Source: Blastocladiella emersonii ATCC 22665
Taxonomy: Eukaryota; Fungi; Blastocladiomycota
Assembly (NCBI GenBank): GCA_025594325.1
Contig: JANHCV010000011.1
Span: forward strand, 1,302,001 to 1,366,000
Direction of reading: 5' to 3'
DNA length: 64,000 nucleotides
This document shows positions 6,319-31,252 of this stretch, piece after piece (the stretch's first letter is position 1; each line of letters begins with the position of its first letter). The notes beneath the pieces were generated by a model. It was not told where the DNA came from, did not search any database, and saw only the letters and a list, made by a program, of their open reading frames with translations. The position numbers and the translations under genes were made by a program.

Positions 6319-7340
6319 TCACCGGTCGTCGGCCGCGGCGACGAGGTGCCCGTTCCCGTTCCCATTGGCGTGCGCCGCTGACGCGGGCCAGTTGCCGAGG
6401 CCGTAGAGGCACCCGAGGAACTTTGCGTCGTCGACGGCGTCCTCGAAGAAGACGTGGCGCAGCTTGAAGAAGGTGCGGCAGGTGAGCAGGGCGTCGGACC
6501 CGGCCTGGTGCTGGACGCCGATGCGGTCAATGTGCAGCTCGTCGGCCACCTCCTGCAGGCCGCCCTTGAGCGGGTGGCACGCGCGCAGCAGGTACTTGAT
6601 GTCGTAGATGCCCGGGAAGTAGGTGCGCAGCAGGCGGAAGAAATCGGGCTCCTCGGCCGGCAGCGGCTTGCAGGTCAGGATCTTGAGCAGGTAGCCAAAG
6701 TCGTAGCCGCTTTACGACAAAGTGGGTGTGAGCGGCGGGGATCGGATGGGAGTGAGACGGAGCGAGCGGTACCTGTGAAAGGAGACCCACTTGACGTCGT
6801 CGACGAGGACGAGGCCGCTGGAGATGAGCAGCTCACCAAAGTGCAGCACGTCGATGCCGCGCTCCTCGTGCTTGTGGAAGTCGAGGCCGGCGTTGGCGAG
6901 CAGGTCGATCGAGTCCTGCGCGTACATGTCCCCACTTCGCGATGACGGGGCGCGAGCGGTCAGCGACACAGCGGCGGGACGGACAGCAGCACCGGTGGTA
7001 GCGCGTACGTCAGGCTGAACTTGAAGTTGAACTGGAAGGTGCAGACGTCGGGCGGCACGTTGCCGCGCTCGTCGGCAAAGGTGATGCCGAGCTGGATGAT
7101 CTTGAGCAGGTCGACGTTGCACCGCAGCGTCTGGTAGTGGTAGTCGGTCGAGGTCTTGAACGAGCCTATTGGGCGGGCCACGATGCCGGGGAACTCGGTG
7201 TCCATGGCCAGGTACGGGTACCGGTCGACCATGTCGCGCAGCAGCGCCATCTCCTGGTCGAGGTTGTCGGCCCACACCTCGCGCATCCCGTAGCTCGGCG
7301 GCGGCTGCGGCGGCTGTTGTGGTGGTGGCGGTGCGGCCAT
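6319..7340 (-). CDS. CAF1: CCR4-NOT deadenylase subunit Caf1/Pop2 (CNOT7/8)
   Basis: [46 protein letters not shown] and [10 protein letters not shown] motifs across two introns. Confidence 0.97.
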
Positions 7341-7849
7341 GGTTTCGCTGTTCGCTCTCTCTCGGTTGCGCGGGGATGCAGTGTGGTGTCGATGCGTGGG
7401 GTGCCGAGTGCGGCGAGTCGTCGGTCCGTGTGCTTCGTGGGGTCTACGCGGTGATGCCGGCGTCCATTGCGGGCTAGGCTGTCGCCGTCGTCGCGAGGAG
7501 GGGAAGCGGAAGCTCGCGGCGAGCGAACCGACACGGACGCGGCGGCCGAGTGGCGCATCACCTGAGCCGGGCGTGACCCGCGGGCGCAGCCGACGCGTCA
7601 CGGCGACGCGTCTCGCACCGCCGCGAGACACGCGCGCGCGTTGGTCACTCGCCGTGGACTTGTTGGTTCCACGTTTTCAGCCCGCGAAAACACACGCGTC
7701 GACGCTTGACAGAGAACGGGCGGGCGGGCGGCCGCCGCACCGCGCGTGCGAGCGAGGGGCGGAATGGAGCCGCCGTTCGGGGGTCAAGGCCGCCGCGCGT
7801 ACCGCCTCCCCGCTCCTTCCCCTCACATCTCTTGACACAAACGACTATC

Positions 7850-9673
7850 ATGCACATCCTCTACGACGACGACGGCGCCAAGTGCGTCGCCCTGACCCGC
7901 CCCTTCCCTCTCCGCTGCCGCTTACGCGGAGCCACCCCCTAGGGACCGTACCGGCGACGACAGCCGTCGGTCGCTCCACGAGCCCGCCGTCGCCAACTCG
8001 CTCGACACGGCGACCATCACCGACCTGTCGCCGCCCACCACCACCGCGTCCGCGCTCGCCGACCACGCGCGGCTGTCGGCACAACCGCTGCACCCGCCCA
8101 AGTTCCGCCACATTCTGATTCTGTCGGGCGCGCCCGATGCGTCGGTCGTCGACGAGACGCTGCTCATGACGCACGAGTGCGACCGCGACGAGACCCTCGT
8201 CAACATCATGGCCACGCTGGCCGAGTACCAGCGCGCCCAGGGGTTCGGCGCCGCGGTCGAGGGCGACGGGCTCGTCACGCTCGAGCGCGTCGTGCTCCCG
8301 CGCTGGCCGCAGGTCCTCGAGCGCGTCACGGCGCTCGCCCGCCGGCTGCGGGAGACGGCGCCGACGCGCGGTGGCGAGGGTGACGGCGAGGTGCTCGACC
8401 TGCTCGTGTTCAACCTGTGCGACGGGTCCGAGATCGACGGGTACCCCGGCGCCTCGGTCACGCGCGACCTCGAGCGTGACGGGTTCATCTTCACCGGGTC
8501 CATGTATGGTGCGTAGCCTATGCTCGGCTTCGCGTCGCGGTGCCTCGGACTGATATGCGCACGCGCGATAGACTTCTACCACATCACCACCCCCAAGACG
8601 CTACTCAAGCGGTACCTGCAGAACGACATGGTGCCGACCTCGGACTTCGTCGAGCTGTCCAAGGACACGGTCGAGGCCGACGTTGACCGCGCCATCGCGC
8701 GCCTCGGTACTTCTGTTCTCGCTCACCCGCGTTGCCACCGCTCCACTAACCCCGCACTCACCACTAGGCTTCCCGCTCATCATCAAGCCGTCCATCAGCT
8801 ACGCCTCGCTCGGGATCACGTCCGCGTCCGTGACGTGGGACCGCCCCGCGGCCATCGCGCAGGCGCGCACGATCCTCGACGAGTACTCCGTCGCCGGGTG
8901 CTTTGTCGAGCGGTTCCTGGCGGGCCGCGAGTTCACGGCCGTCGTCACGGGCCACGGCGACCACCTGCACGTCTACCCGGTCGCCGAGCGCGCCTTCAAC
9001 CCGCGCATCAAGCAGAACGAGCGCCTCATTGCCTTCGACAAGTACTGGGACGGGTACTCGCTCAACGGCGACCGGCCCGCCGCCGACCGGCCCTACTTCT
9101 TCAAGTACCAGCTCGCGCCCACCGAGTGGCAGGAGCGGCTCATGGATGTCGCGCGCGATGCGTATCGGGGTACGGCTCGTCGGTTTTTGTGGGACGGTGG
9201 GGCGGAGCTGACCTCACACCGCGCGGCGTGTAGCGTGCCAAGGGTCCGGCTACGGCCGCGTCGACATGCGCACCGCGTCCGTCGACCAGTGCGACGTGCA
9301 GGTCCTCGAGGTGAACGCCAACTGCGGGTTCAGTTTCGACGACACGTCGTCGCTCGGCGAGGTACTCTCGTACACTCCTCGCTCGCCACCACACATCCCA
9401 CTAACCACGAACACCCCACGCCGTACCGCACAGATCCTCCGCCTATCGCAGGTCCCTGGCATCACGTTCCTCAAGGAGCTCATGTGCCAGTCGGTCGCGC
9501 GCTGGCGCACGCCCGACGTCGCTGTCAGCAGCAGCAGCCAGCGACCCACCCGCATCGCCACCAAGGTCGAGAAGCCGTTGCCGCCGCGTGCGGCCACGCC
9601 CGTCGGCGAAGCAGCAGAGGACGTCGGTGACGAGCAGCAGGTCCCGCCACTCGCCGTCGGCGCGGCCGAGTAG
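7850..9673 (+). CDS. ATP-grasp enzyme, D-alanine--D-alanine ligase-like (6 exons)
   Basis: Spliced product has VFNLCDG...GYPG, FTGS, GFPLIIKP, FVERFLAGREF, GSGYGRVDMR and LEVNANCG. Five canonical introns restore a continuous frame. Confidence 0.85.
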
Positions 9674-10029
9674 CACGCGCGGGCGGGATCACGGATCCCA
9701 TCATGAACGACCACTTGCGGTGCATGTGCGAGCGCGACGAGCGGGTGGGCGGTGGGGCCCCCGCTGCCAGTCAAATTATAAACCACGACTTTTTGCTGCC
9801 CATGTTTCGCACGATCCTCTACCAGACCTCGGCGCGTGGACAGCACGCGGAATCGGAGCGGGCGCTGGGTGGCCATGTCAACTTCGCGCGCGAGCGAGTC
9901 AGGCTGCTGTTGTTGCGCAACGACGTGCTCATCCCGCGTGCGCGGCGAGTCCAGGTGTTGTGGTCGCCGCGGAGCCCCAGCGTGACCTCGTGGAACTCGG
10001 GCGAAAAGTCGTCCAAGAGAATCCGCATA

Positions 10030-10614
10030 TCATCGCGTGCTCGAGGGGTGAGGAAATCCTTGCCGCACTCGGTAGAATGAGATTGCCGCCTCATGCCAAG
10101 CGCCGCTGCGAGCCCGAGGAAGAAATGTTCGGAGCAACTTGCCCGTAATCCTCGGCGCGCGGCGAGTCGCGATCCGCGCCGCGTCCGACTCGCCGAACAG
10201 CCGGATCGGGTGCCCGCGCGCGCGCAGCCGGCGGACCACTTCGTCGGCGGGGATCTCGGGCACGGCGGATGCGTCGGCGTCGTTGGCAGCGGCAGGGAGT
10301 GCGGGCGTGGACCTGCCGCCGCCGCGGGGGCGCGTCGGGGACGGGGTCCGCTTCGACGACCCGACGGCCGGCGAGGAGGGCGACGACGATGCGGCGGCTG
10401 TTGCTGCTGCGGCAGCGGCGGCGGCGGCGGCAGCGGCCTCCTGTGCAGCGAGCCGCTCGAGCTCGCCGCGGCTGAGGTACTTTTTGCGCTTGGGCGCCGG
10501 CGCCGACGACGCATCCGCGGCGGGCGGAGCGCCGGCCGCTTCTTCGAGCGCGCGCTTCCTCTTCCCCACGTCGTGCTGCTTCACCTGGCTCACAATCGAT
10601 GTCTGAAAGTCCAT
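10030..10614 (-). pseudogene. 5'-truncated duplicate of PRP18 (first ~148 codons) fused to unrelated sequence
   Basis: Reverse complement of 10168-10614 aligns with 29941-30387 with ~14 substitutions by eye. The upstream region (to ~10725) also aligns more loosely. Similarity ends abruptly after ...GESDAARIA. Confidence 0.85.
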
Positions 10615-10854
10615 GGGCGTCGATGGCGTTGCAGGGCGCGGTGGTGTGAGGGGACCGGGAGAGCGAGCACCTCCAGCTGCTCAGCCGACCGACCGACATG
10701 CATGCGACCACCCGCAGCTCGCTCTCCCTTCGACGCGTCGGGAAATCATGTGAGAGTCGGGCGGCCGACGCGAGACAGTTTCAGTAGCCGAGCTCCGGTC
10801 TGAACCGCTCGCTCCTCTCTGCTCTCCCTCGATCCTTCTCTAAATTAGTGACCC

Positions 10855-12165
10855 ATGAAAGCAGCCAACTCGATGCAACGCGCTCAATCCTCCTCGCCAT
10901 CAAAGTTTGATGAGCCCGCCGAAGGCAACCAGCCGGCCCCGCTGCTGACGATAACAGTCGAGCGGCTCGCGCAGGCGCTGCAGTGTATGGGCCGCTTCTC
11001 CCGGCAAACGAACACTTCCACCCCGTAACTCACGGAGGGCTTCCTTCTCAGACGGCCGCATCCCGCGCCCGGTCCTCGCGGCGCTGTCCGAGAACCAGTG
11101 CGCGCTGCTCGTCAAGCACCAAGTCCTGCGGTACCTGACGGTGCCGCAGCTCGCGCGCGTCGAGGCGTGCAACCCGGTACGACATTGCTCATTCGCTTAC
11201 ACTACTCGCGCGAGCCCCATCGACTGATTCGAGGAGCGTTCCCTCACGTTCGCCCAGCTGCTCGAGACGCTGACCGACGCCCTGTGGGAGTCGCACTGGG
11301 ACAACCTCGCCGCCGACCACCCGCAGTCGTGCGACGCGGTCATTGCCGCCGTCGAGCGCGAGGGCGACGACGTCGAGGTCTCGTTCAAGGAGCTGTTCCT
11401 GGTACGCTCGCGCTCGACCTGCGCTCCGCGATTCGGTCCCAACTTACCCTTAAACCTCACGTGTAGCGGTGGCGCCGCGCCGGGGAAGCGCGCAAGAAGC
11501 GCGTGGCCGACCGGATCGCGTCATCGCGCACGTCCGCATCTACACCATCCGCTGCTCCCGCTCGCGCCGGCACCGGCACCGGCGCACGCGGGTCCCGCGC
11601 ACCGCCACCTGACCCACCCGCGACACAACGTCGGCAGGTCCAGGTCGTGTCTCGCGCCGAAGCCGCGCGGCGCGTCCCGAGCCTGACCTCGGGCGCGTGG
11701 CGCGGGAGCGAGACGCCCGGGCTCGTCGACAAGCTGCGCGCCAAGGTGCGGCGCACGTCGGCGCAGCGGTCGCCGGGTGTCGGGCACGGCGTCGTCACGG
11801 CAACGGCCGCGATCCCACCACTCCCGATCGCGCGCAAGGTGACGGTTCCGCCGAAACTCCCGATCCGCGAAACCGCACCACCGCGGCCGGCCCCGAAACG
11901 CGCGGCGGACGGGACGCTGACGACGACGATGCGGGCGCCCGAGGACGTGCTCGCGGCGCGCGTCAAGGCGCGGCTGCAGGAGCGGCGCGAGCGCGAGGCG
12001 GCCGAGGCGGCCAAGACGACGAAGCAGTGGCGCAGCGCGGCGGCAAGGGCCGAGGCCGCGGGGCCGGCGAGTGCGCGCGTGGTGCTGAGCAGCCAGATCG
12101 CGATGGGGCGCGACGGTAAGGCGGGCGATGCGTTGTGGCGCGCGTTATCGGGCGGGTTGCCATGA
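10855..12165 (+). CDS. ELA1: Elongin A-like protein
   Basis: Spliced segment LRYLTVPQLARVEACNP...LLETLTDALWESHWDNLAADHP...SFKELFLRWRRAGEARKKRV fits the Elongin A domain pattern, followed by a basic low-complexity tail. Confidence 0.65.
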
Positions 12166-27772: not shown

Positions 27773-28190
27773 GCTGGTCTAGTCTATGAAGCAATCTATG
27801 GACGACGGCGTCGCTGGAGAGCGGAGACCGGCCGTGTCCGCGAGAAGTTCATTTTGTACGGCTCGCGAACAGCGGCGGACCAGGAACCCGGTTTGCGGCC
27901 GAGACGCGGCCCTCGTTTCATCGTGACTACGCCACCGTACACTAGGCGGCGCCGCCCGAAACGGATTTTCATACGTTGCCTGTCTGCCGTGCACCAGACA
28001 CGAGGCACACGAGATGAACCCACCCTCGCGCGTGCGCGTGCAGTTCATTTCGCGATGGTCACGGTCCGCGCGCGACCGTGGCCAGCCTCACGCGACGGTG
28101 GCCGCTGAGCTCGTGCGCGAGAAGGTCGTGGGCTCCGTTTACGCGCGCTGTACACGCGCAACAAAGACGGCTAAACTGTAAGCGAAACGA

Positions 28191-28630
28191 CGTGGTTTAT
28201 AATTGATCGTAGGCGGGGCCCCAACGCCCGCTGCCACGCACGCGAGTGTAGGCGAGTGGTGCTTGTGATGGGATCCGTGATCCCGTCCCCGCCTCGCGTG
28301 CAGTGCACGCGCCGCGCGCTCACGACTCGGCCGCGCCGACGACGAGTGGCGGGACCTGCTGCTAGTCGTCGGCCTCCTCGACTGCTTCGCCGATGGGCGT
28401 GGTCGCGCGCGTCGGCTGCTTCTCGAGCTAAGCGGCGATACGGACGGGCAGCTGGCAGCTGCTGGCGACGACGTTGAGCGCGCGCCAGCGTGTAATCGAC
28501 TTGAACATGAGCCCCATGAGGAAACGCGGTGCGAGGGACTTGCGACAGCCGGCGCGCGATGCGAAGAGGGGGCCGTTGCCGGCCAGGAACAAAGCATCCG
28601 GCGACCGCGTGCTCGTTGAGTATGGTGGTT
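28191..28630 (-). pseudogene. Decayed, internally deleted copy of the 3' part and 3' flank of the ATP-grasp gene
   Basis: Reverse complement aligns to ~8860-8925 (TILDEYSVAGCFV vs TILNEHAVAGCFV) and ~9440-9787 (cagcaggtcccgccactcg, gggatcacggatcccatca, aattataaaccacg), with indels and stops. Confidence 0.8.
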
Positions 28631-29049: not shown

Positions 29050-29232
29050 TGAGGCGATGAGGGTGGCGACGCGCTTCTTGCGCGTTTCCTCCGCGTGGCG
29101 CCGTCGCTACCCGTGAAGTCGTAGGACGAGAAGGGCCGAATCACGGAGCGCAGACCATAAACAGTTCCTTGAACGAGATCTCAACGTCGTCGCCCTCGCG
29201 CTCGACGGCGGCAATGACCGCGTCGCACGACT
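29050..29232 (-). pseudogene. Fragment of the Elongin A-like gene (exon-intron-exon)
   Basis: Reverse complement matches ~11326-11530, including agtcgtgcgacgcggtcattgccgccgtcgagcgcgagggcgacgacg and cgcgcaagaagcgcgt. Confidence 0.85.
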
Positions 29233-29940
29233 CATATCGACTCCATAGTCACGTAGAGCAGAGATTGATTGCTGTAGCCGGCCCACGTCGTCTGTAAACG
29301 TTGCGATGTCCTTTGGAGTGGCATCCAACTGTCGTGGATCGGGATCATCTCCATACACATCCGCACATCCGCAAACCTCGCCAGGAAGCAGGTCATCTGC
29401 GCCGAATACTGCTGAGCTCGGGTGCGAAGAACGGCGAGCTCGGCAAGCGTCACGGCAAGCCGCGACTGGCGGCAGGCGTCATCACGAGAAGTCCGCTGCC
29501 GGGCGTCCTCGACCAGGTGCGTGGTGTGGTCAAGTTTTCGCAGCAAAGTCTCAAGGAATCTGAGCGCGAGTCGCAAGATCACGCGAACAGGTAGTTCTGC
29601 GCCGTAACGTTCAAGGTAGATTCCAAGAATGTTGGGGCGCTTCCCGCCGTCGTTCCCAGAGCGGGCGAGCAACGCCTCTGCTCGGGCCGCGATCGCTTGG
29701 CCCTCCTGCAGTAGCCGCTTGTGGCGGATGGTGCGGTCCGATTGCATCAAGTCTGACATTTAATCCATGTTGTGGTTGAGCGCTGCATGGCAAGTGCGTT
29801 TCCGAGAGGGAGAGTGAGCTGCGAGTGAGCGACAAGCGGGTGGTCGCGTGCGGGGGGCAGTCGGCGGAGCTGCTGCTCCCTGACGCTTCCTCTCTCCCCC
29901 TCCCCTCACTCCAACGCATCCTGCAACGCCACCAACGCCC

Positions 29941-31252
29941 ATGGACTTTTTGAAATCGATTGTGAGCCAGGTGAAGCAGCACGACGTGGGGAAGAAGAAG
30001 CGCGCGCTCGAAGAAGCGGCCGGCGCTCCGCCCGCCGCGGATGCGTCGTCGGCGCCGGCGCCCAAGCGCAAAAAGTACCTCAGCCGCGGCGAGCTCGAGC
30101 GGCTCGCTGCACAGGAGGCCGCTGCCGCCGCCGCCGCCGCTGCCGCAGCAGCAACAGCCGCCGCATCATCGTCGCCCTCCTCACCGGCTGTCGGGTCGTC
30201 GAAGCGGTCTCCGTCCCCGACGCGCTCCCGCGGCGGCGGCCGGTCCACGCCCGCACCCCCTGCCGCTGCCGACGACCCCGACGCATCCGCCGTGCCCGAG
30301 ATCCCCGCCGACGAAGTGGTCCGCCGGCTGCGCGCGCGCGGGCACCCGATCCGGCTGTTCGGCGAGTCGGACGCGGCGCGGATCGCGCGGCTGCGGACCG
30401 CCGAGGCCGAGCTGGCCGACGAGACGCGGCACAAGGGCCAGCGCAACGAGTACGCCAAGCAGCTCGCGCGCACCGAGGCCGGGCTCGCGCTCGAGATCCT
30501 GCAGCGGAGCGGCGCCAGCGGTATGGGAAGCGATGCAGCGTCGTCGTCGGGCGCGGCGGCTTCCGATCCAGCAAGCGACGCGGCTGCTGCCGCTGCCGCA
30601 GACGACACGGCGTCGGGACCCGGCACCGGCGCGACGGGCGCGACCGGCGGCGGCGTGTACAAGCCCGAGTACGACGTGACGCAGCTGTCGGGGTCGCTGC
30701 TAGCGACGGACCCGGACAAGTGCTTTGTGCTCGTGTACGTGTACCTGCGGCGGATGCTCGACGTGTGGGACTTGGAGCTGGCGGCGCGGCCCGACCGCGT
30801 CAAGCGCGGGGTCGCGGGCAAGCACGAGTACACCAAGTTCGTGCAGACCAAGGAGAACCTGCGGCCCTTCTTCAAGCTGCTCAAGCGCAAGGCCGTCGAG
30901 AACGACGTCATGGAGAAGATTGCCGATATCCTCAAGTATGTGCAGCAGCGCGAGTACGTCATGGCCAACGACTACTACCTCCGGCTCTCCATCGGCAACG
31001 CGCCGTGGCCCATTGGCGTGACCATGGTCGGGTACGTCGTCGCTCTCGCCGTCTTGAAGGCTTCGTACTCACCCCCACGACGTGACGTGCAGCATCCACG
31101 AGCGGTCGGCGCGCGAAAAGATCTTCTCGAACCAGGTCGCCCACGTCCTCAACGACGAGACCCAACGCAAATGGATCCAGAGCATCAAGCGCATCATGAC
31201 CTTTGCCCAGCAAAAGTTCCCGCCCGACGACCACGCCAAGCTTGTCGGCTAA
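29941..31252 (+). CDS. PRP18: Pre-mRNA splicing factor Prp18
   Basis: SFM/PRP4-like motif [18 protein letters not shown] and C-terminal domain [19 protein letters not shown]|[10 protein letters not shown]...[18 protein letters not shown]; one intron. Confidence 0.96.

Follow-up and report, generated by a model that had tools for sequence, protein, structure and literature searches.

The 64,000 nt of Blastocladiella emersonii ATCC 22665 DNA analysed here, below called the window, contain at positions 7850-9673 of the forward strand a six-exon gene for an ATP-grasp protein with the fold of D-alanine-D-alanine ligase (Ddl). On balance we think it probable that this protein is a cytosolic ATP-grasp carboxylate-amine ligase of a subfamily here called A-type, that its product is something other than D-Ala-D-Ala, and that its gene reached the eukaryotes early, in a single entry from bacteria. 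Judged from its homologues, the ligase is no peculiarity of B. emersonii but has been conserved in early-diverging fungi and in tardigrades. The gene itself is already known, deposited in GenBank as H9P43_008456 under the label "hypothetical protein"; for the subfamily no published description was found in the searches made, those covering fungi or tardigrades included.

Gene model

When spliced locally, the gene gives a product of 500 aa that is 100% identical to the deposited protein of B. emersonii ATCC 22665 (P0001 below), whose contig is 1.5 Mb long. The five introns measure 61-72 nt and all five run GT..AG. Exon 1 (7850..7881) holds the ATG + 10.7 codons, in a part where the homologues show no conservation, and is followed by intron 1 (7882..7942, 61 nt, GTGCGT..TAG, phase 2), whose position is unique in comparison with the other species. 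Exon 2 (7943..8508) encodes a disordered N-terminal tail (residues ~12-60) and the Ddl-type N-terminal domain with its FNLCDGSEIDGYPG motif, and ends at intron 2 (8509..8571, 63 nt, phase 1, Y199/D200). The central domain begins in exon 3 (8572..8706), which includes K208, aligned with K97 of Escherichia coli DdlB. After intron 3 (8707..8767, 61 nt, phase 1, within G245) it continues as the ATP-grasp central domain in exon 4 (8768..9169), with K251, A257-S258, E292, E299 and the omega-loop motif FDKYW. Intron 4 (9170..9233, 64 nt, phase 1, R378/A379) separates this from exon 5 (9234..9361), which carries the catalytic C-terminal domain with GYGRVDMR, LEVNANCG and an SS dipeptide aligned to DdlB S281-L282. 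Intron 5 (9362..9433, 72 nt) lies in phase 0 between E421 and I422, and exon 6 (9434..9673) encodes the final helices of the fold and a disordered C-terminal tail, and includes the stop codon.

When P0001 is aligned with its homologues from Allomyces, Catenaria, chytrids, tardigrades and bacteria, junctions 2-5 fall in conserved stretches free of gaps, hence splicing at these four is supported by homology. The one support for intron 1 is that it is required, together with exon 1, because upstream of exon 2 its reading frame meets a stop and offers no in-frame ATG. The GC content at third codon positions (GC3) is 0.94 and that of the whole coding sequence 0.69, against 0.67 for the window, thus the composition of the gene fits the host. 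A preliminary description of the gene had proposed six exons, five introns and host codon usage. At the level of sequence comparison we regard the gene as genuine and this model as confirmed.

Protein family and fold

A hidden Markov model search against Pfam matched P0001 to Dala_Dala_lig_C, the family suggested in the preliminary description, with 50.6 bits (cut-off 24). The companion model Dala_Dala_lig_N (PF01820) gave no match at E <= 0.1 in P0001 or in five homologues; an N-domain structurally equivalent to that of Ddl was nevertheless modelled for P0001 (AlphaFold, Foldseek). Single exons by themselves gave weak family matches only. In a sequence search of PDB the best matches were Ddl enzymes, at E ~1e-8 and, with the family profile, at 1e-32.

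The AlphaFold model, built from an alignment of 111 sequences, has a mean predicted local distance difference test score of 83, with values above 90 in the core (~61-450) and below 50 for residues 1-45 and 465-500. The top PDB folds retrieved by Foldseek were exclusively Ddl or Van ligases. The target TM-score was 0.76-0.78 for DdlB of E. coli (2dln/1iow) and Pseudomonas aeruginosa (8evy), and since this holds across the whole target, the fold of P0001 is a complete three-domain Ddl type. The fold and the Lys, Glu, Asp and Asn residues for ATP and Mg2+ that define the ATP-grasp superfamily are all found in P0001, and a feature search of the ESM Atlas returned bacterial Ddl-like clusters only.

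The curated models for Ddl itself (NCBIfam / TIGR01205) both failed on P0001, with scores of 56.7 against a cut-off of 243 and 49.8 against 245.65. The VanA/VanG-type D-Ala-D-Lac and D-Ala-D-Ser ligases share the fold, but the NCBIfam Van models reach 20-30 bits on P0001 where the cut-offs are 495-775, and there is no resistance-operon context. The L-amino acid ligases (BacD/YwfE, BL00235, RizA) are ATP-grasp enzymes making free dipeptides, the kind of product we propose for P0001, and appear as weak PDB matches; their ATPgrasp_N, ATP-grasp_4 and LAL_C2 architecture was, however, not found in P0001 with Pfam. The ATP-grasp enzymes described for thiohistidine dipeptides (PMC13674229) were also considered; they are RimK-like and NHISS-linked, and were set aside as unrelated.

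Active site

To map residues we used profile alignments (hhalign, HMMER) to Yersinia pestis Ddl and to E. coli DdlB (from NC_000913.3), which is ~18-20% identical to P0001. Nine DdlB residues are kept: K97 as K208, K144 as K251, E180 as E292, E187 as E299, R255 as R387, D257 as D389, E270 as E404, N272 as N406 and S281 as S417. Three sites are changed, S150 to A257, K215-Y216 to Y337-W338 and L282 to S418; it should be noted that a register one residue off, which pairs K/R336-Y337 with K215-Y216, may apply instead. In the motif register the Ddl sequence LHG.GGEDG..QG corresponds to LCDG.E.DGYPG in P0001, so that DdlB H63 becomes C170. The kept catalytic residues are invariant or nearly so across the A-type family, and the altered equivalents of S150, K215-Y216, L282 and H63 are conserved family-wide in their changed form. 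In Van ligases the choice of the second substrate shifts with changes in the omega loop at K215-Y216. Additional to the Ddl set are three charged residues invariant in the family, D171, D176 and R391.

In Ddl an N-domain Glu (E15 in DdlB) binds the amino group of D-Ala1. The A-type family has a conserved N-domain Glu, E89 (consensus 'EY'), whose correspondence to E15 lies outside the aligned range; alignment of the N-domain to that of DdlB fell short of significance.

P0001 shares with DdlB the residues for ATP, Mg2+ and the transition state, and presumably also the acyl-phosphate mechanism, while differing in its substrate site. We partly infer that the phosphoryl-transfer machinery is intact and that the substrate pocket is altered, in a way that has itself been conserved. 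On these comparisons P0001 is placed outside canonical Ddl (EC 6.3.2.4), as it stays below the curated thresholds, goes unmatched by the N-domain model, differs at the substrate residues and lacks the gene context of Ddl (presented below). The reading of the active site in the preliminary description agrees with these results. The motifs it quoted are present (FNLCDG at 167-172, IIKP at 249-252, ERF..GREF at 292-300, GRVDMR at 386-391 and EVNAN at 404-408), its assignment of the protein to the Ddl-like ATP-grasp enzymes, with the catalytic core intact, is borne out by the Pfam match, fold and residue mapping, and FNLCDG indeed stands in place of the Ddl LHG. Its suggestion of a substrate other than D-Ala-D-Ala still appears likely in view of LCD and the further substrate-site changes.

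Taxonomic range and phylogeny

Orthologues were found in the Blastocladiomycota (B. emersonii, B. britannica, Allomyces, Catenaria, Sorochytrium), in many Chytridiomycota such as Batrachochytrium (BATDEDRAFT_33473), Synchytrium, Chytridium and Globomyces, and further in Gonapodya (two copies), many Mortierellomycota, Rozella allomycis and the aphelid Amoeboaphelidium. Among animals the eutardigrades Ramazzottius, Hypsibius and Paramacrobiotus (two copies) carry the gene. Three protein searches revealed no copy in Dikarya, Mucorales or other eukaryotes. Bacterial relatives amounted to 532 cluster representatives at E <= 1e-30 and are spread over more than 500 GTDB species, mainly of Acidobacteriota (Vicinamibacteria), Gemmatimonadota, Bacteroidota, Beijerinckiaceae and Planctomycetota.

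The main tree was a maximum likelihood tree of 61 rows (LG+C20, ultrafast bootstrap and SH-like approximate likelihood ratio test) with canonical-like Ddl as outgroup. It contains a clade of bacterial SET-fused ligases, here called B-type (100/100), and sister to it a clade of A-type and eukaryotic proteins (97/93). Within the latter, all sampled bacterial A-type proteins (96/87) are separated from all named eukaryotes (98/95), with one metagenome protein at the base of the eukaryotic clade. Monophyly was recovered for the Blastocladiomycota (86/91), for the Mortierellomycota (100/100) and for the tardigrades (99/93), and the backbone of the eukaryotic clade is a polytomy. The same picture emerged from a quick tree and from a FastTree of 198 rows. 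P0001 groups with the A-type, apart from B-type and canonical Ddl, and has the family motifs. Bacterial A-type proteins (such as L045:7749-8906, or P0045 of Vicinamibacteria) are 35-47% identical to it over the full length and share NLCDG.E.DGYPG, SYAS.GI, ER.L.FD.YW, GYGRVD.R and LEVNANCG.

We take a bacterial origin from the narrow eukaryotic range, the bacterial sister and outgroups, and the broad bacterial range. Direction of transfer and donor are likewise derived from the distribution, because the eukaryotic clade is sister to the bacterial proteins rather than nested among them. One very early entry into eukaryotes from a bacterial source seems most likely.

Shared introns and synteny

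Intron positions were compared by mapping annotated proteins onto their own loci. The phase-0 intron before I422 (..SLGE|ILRLS..) is present in B. emersonii, Allomyces, Catenaria, B. britannica, Gonapodya, Ramazzottius and Paramacrobiotus, and an intron of Rozella has the identical acceptor. The phase-1 intron at Y199/D200 occurs also in Allomyces, Catenaria, Sorochytrium and Mortierella alpina. That in G245 is common to B. emersonii, Allomyces and Sorochytrium, that at R378/A379 to these three and Catenaria, and two more positions are common to Sorochytrium and Mortierella. The aphelid copy has no introns. Positions shared across phyla imply that an early fungal ancestor already had the gene with introns.

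The divergent upstream CAF1 gene is kept in B. emersonii, B. britannica (L087) and Catenaria (L086), and together with the shared introns this synteny indicates vertical inheritance within early-diverging fungi. A tblastx comparison of the B. britannica downstream genes with the window gave no match besides CAF1 and the ligase. The neighbours are eukaryotic at all 12 eukaryotic loci examined, and the metagenomic clade member P0069 likewise lies among eukaryotic genes.

On this evidence the tardigrade genes descend from that intron-bearing eukaryotic gene and not from a separate bacterial transfer. Their route would be either transfer between fungus and animal or deep opisthokont ancestry with massive loss.

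The preliminary description had seen in the gene an old bacterial-derived one, domesticated in a fungus. A long eukaryotic residence and bacterial relatives outside the eukaryotes agree with this, but the gene is clade-wide and vertically inherited and thus not special to one fungus. The description had also named grouping with a vertically inherited, broadly eukaryotic family of known function as an outcome that would speak against its proposal; the family is indeed vertical in these fungi, but it is neither broadly eukaryotic nor of known function.

Two observations concern deposited models of homologues. In the 345-aa protein of Rozella allomycis (L083:6957-7035) the sequence '..YVLE' runs directly into 'ILRLS..', and what is annotated as the donor, GTAAAT, encodes Val-Asn of the conserved motif LEVNA. 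A conserved catalytic segment is therefore probably missing from the deposited model, and the real intron is probably shorter with the same acceptor. In some Mortierellomycota models (P0209, P0227, P0237) the ligase is fused to a Sos7 (PF20882) domain. As Sos7 is a separate gene downstream of the ligase in M. alpina (L091:12490-14068), these fusions are probably annotation artefacts.

Gene context in bacteria and eukaryotes

In bacteria the A-type gene is intronless and co-operonic with partners, whereas the fungal gene is solitary amid housekeeping genes. The recurrent bacterial order is a small SET protein, the A-type ligase, a B-type ligase with C-terminal SET domain (B-SET), and an ABC_membrane_3 protein. 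Sometimes the A-type is duplicated or fused A-A (~730 aa), and some genomes also have fused ABC exporters, MFS_3 exporters or an M1 peptidase near the cassette. A and B types are co-operonic paralogues in at least eight bacterial phyla, and B-SET proteins number more than 3,000 at E <= 1e-10. Examples of the cassette are L045:7229-11396, from a Ferruginibacter metagenome-assembled genome (MAG), L081:8001-11755, L037, L040, L050 and L034, among others. Many B-SET proteins are labelled 'SET domain-containing protein-lysine N-methyltransferase' or 'D-alanine-D-alanine ligase'. No account of the ligase/SET cassette was found in the literature searches made.

The bacterial proteins closest in sequence to the fungal one are those of Vicinamibacteria, where in MAGs (L002:6419-8912, L005) the A-type is paired with an L-amino-acid-ligase-type ATP-grasp gene between coaE and uvrB; this neighbour (L002:6419-7741) has the ATPgrasp_N, ATP-grasp_4 and LAL_C2 domains. 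Among the bacterial neighbours checked there were no murein genes. PADLOC matched no cassette member, and a defence-system reading was dropped for that reason. As several ligases, methyltransferases and export functions occur together, we propose that the bacterial product is a small modified peptide or amide, and by analogy this operon context backs a small peptide or amide metabolite as the likely kind of product of the ligase.

The eukaryotic copies are flanked by unrelated housekeeping genes. In the window no B-SET, small SET, L-amino-acid-ligase-type or ABC_membrane_3 partner was detected, tblastn returning the ligase gene alone. A bacterial-type SET gene within 10 kb of the ligase was seen at one of the 12 eukaryotic loci, that of B. 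britannica. Here (L087:6636-10976) the ligase is directly followed at its 3' side by two genes, one for a fusion of S-adenosylmethionine decarboxylase (AdoMetDC) and spermidine synthase and one for an AdoMetDC-SET protein. In this second protein the SET domain shows 37-41% identity to that of bacterial B-SET proteins, and the Atlas clusters nearest to it are bacterial. The AdoMetDC/SET pair was not seen at the other 11 eukaryotic loci examined, including the B. emersonii window. The SET association in B. britannica may be a remnant of the bacterial ligase-SET link, or parallel to it.

Proposed function and origin

We propose the following for the ligase. The conserved set of Lys, Glu, Asp and Asn would bind ATP and Mg2+; the carboxylate of one substrate would be phosphorylated to an acyl phosphate, and the amine of a second substrate would attack this to give an amide, ADP and Pi. 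As the D-Ala-selecting residues are replaced, the product would probably be other than D-Ala-D-Ala, more likely a different small amide or dipeptide-like metabolite formed by the chemistry of the bacterial A-type. The gene would have entered once, most probably from bacteria, before Rozella, aphelids, chytrids, Blastocladiomycota and Mortierellomycota diverged. Early intron gain and vertical descent would have followed, with loss in other fungal lineages, and the tardigrade copies would be descendants of the same intron-bearing eukaryotic gene.

Several points weigh against this proposal. The A-type subfamily is biochemically uncharacterised, and eukaryotes appear to keep the A-type alone without the bacterial partners, so its role may differ there. 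The hhalign alignment covers DdlB from residue 73 on, excluding E15. The eukaryotic clade is the sister of the sampled bacterial A-type, and nesting within it was not seen. Finally, the negative result for Dikarya comes from word-filtered searches.

Beyond the proposal for the ligase itself we speculate, tentatively and with more doubt than confidence, that the A-type belongs to an unrecognised pathway. Hundreds of bacterial species would use two or three Ddl-like ligases, SET methyltransferases and a membrane or exporter component to make a methylated di- or tripeptide-like metabolite. Early fungi would have captured the first ligase and kept it for more than half a billion years, and an intron-bearing copy would later have passed between fungi and eutardigrades. 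The fungal product would be an amide characteristic of early-diverging fungi and tardigrades, possibly an amino-acid or polyamine conjugate, and B. britannica perhaps also captured a bacterial-type SET, fused to AdoMet decarboxylase and adjacent to the AdoMetDC-spermidine synthase gene.

Alternative explanations

The most obvious other reading is a genuine D-Ala-D-Ala (or D-Ala-D-Ser or D-Ala-D-Lac) ligase making the classical dipeptide for a purpose other than murein. The nearest solved structures, like the nearest sequence families, are without exception Ddl or Van ligases, and the catalytic core with the equivalents of R255 and S281 is kept. The scores far under the curated cut-offs, the missing Pfam Ddl_N match and the family-conserved alterations at S150, K215-Y216, L282 and H63 point the other way, the eukaryotic hosts have no murein, and the bacterial neighbours are SET-domain, transporter-like and ATP-grasp genes; we find this reading very unlikely. 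Another reading is a ligase of the MysD type, which adds an amino acid to mycosporine-glycine. MysD is Ddl-like, and fungi produce mycosporines. The family was not seen in Dikarya, however, which are the best-known fungal mycosporine makers. Neither the bacterial neighbourhoods nor the flanks of the eukaryotic copies examined contain genes for a sugar-phosphate cyclase (DDGS/EEVS), an O-methyltransferase or MysC, and judged by this context a MysD-type role is highly doubtful. A mycosporine-like amino acid cluster in Vicinamibacteria was also looked for and rejected on context, the upstream genes being accC, thiE, folD and coaE with no DDGS or O-methyltransferase. MysD is described as a substrate-promiscuous ATP-grasp ligase of the mycosporine-like amino acid pathway (PMC11983340). 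Rather than a small molecule, the target might be a protein or ribosomal peptide, modified by RimK-like tailing or side-chain ligation and, in bacteria, methylated by the SET methyltransferase. The constant bacterial association with SET, the paralogue fused to SET and the fact that SET is typically a protein-lysine methyltransferase fit such a role. On the other hand, the model predicts a closed three-domain Ddl fold with the omega loop over the pocket, and characterised closed Ddl-type enzymes act on small molecules. No precursor-peptide gene was recognised in the operons, in which small open reading frames were not surveyed systematically, and the exporter-like genes fit a secreted small product. 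Overall we hold a protein modifier to be unlikely.

As to the history of the gene, the ligase could be an ancestral opisthokont gene kept in early fungi and tardigrades, with the bacterial A-type as recipients or with descent from the last universal common ancestor, and no transfer from bacteria to fungus. This would agree with the sister position of the eukaryotic clade and with the intron common to fungi and tardigrades. It seems improbable to us, as three protein searches detected no further eukaryote group, the next outgroups (B-type and canonical Ddl) are bacterial, and the A and B types are co-operonic paralogues across bacterial phyla. At the other extreme, contamination of the assembly or a bacterial insertion acquired recently by the B. 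emersonii lineage alone could be suggested by the resemblance to bacterial proteins and the lack of a Dikarya homologue. Five spliceosomal introns, the host-like GC3, the CAF1 and PRP18-like flanks on a 1.5-Mb contig, and the synteny and intron positions common to other Blastocladiomycota refute this, and its probability is negligible.

Other features of the window and related observations

In B. emersonii the ligase gene is flanked by CAF1 and PRP18-like genes. The divergent upstream neighbour, a CAF1/POP2 deadenylase gene at 6383..7312 on the reverse strand, is collinear with the pair of CAF1 and ATP-grasp genes in B. britannica (L087). The two divergent genes may share the promoter region 7313-7849.

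A decayed inverted duplicate of exon 6 and the 3' flank lies at 28181..28552 on the reverse strand, with 72.6% identity to 9439-9797 in blastn and, in tblastn, 59% identity to P0001 residues 433-500. It is part of a partly decayed inverted copy of the ligase 3' region, found in the segments 28181-28552, 29827-30387 and 29073-29232 (all on the reverse strand). Besides exon 6 with its flank, this copy matches 10168-10724 (PRP18-like) with 92% and 11325-11500 with 78% identity. As only the last ligase exon is duplicated, the second copy is a gene fragment.

A published list of bacterial horizontal gene transfers in Batrachochytrium dendrobatidis includes a 'D-alanine-D-alanine ligase' with introns and reported expression (PMC5005798). 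The entry (Table 1 no. 20, supplementary file 3) is XP_006675824.1, with an E of 8e-167 and the Gene Ontology term SAM-dependent methyltransferase. It is apparently distinct from the B. dendrobatidis orthologue of P0001, BATDEDRAFT_33473 (EGF78901.1, 379 aa), and may be a B-type/SET-like relative. If so, chytrids would retain more of the bacterial cassette than Blastocladiella.

Implications

Enzymes with the Ddl fold are textbook murein enzymes and antibiotic targets, and here a family of them, the A-type, is conserved in organisms free of murein. Its conservation from Rozella and aphelids to Mortierella, and in tardigrades, points to an undescribed metabolite in the least-studied branches of the fungi. 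The shared introns are a rare datable marker. They indicate that a bacterial-type gene entered the fungal stem once, long ago, and they connect fungi with tardigrades, either by a link from one eukaryote to another or by a very deep origin in common. Solving the product of one member would provide annotation for thousands of genes that at present carry a wrong label, either D-alanine-D-alanine ligase or protein-lysine methyltransferase.

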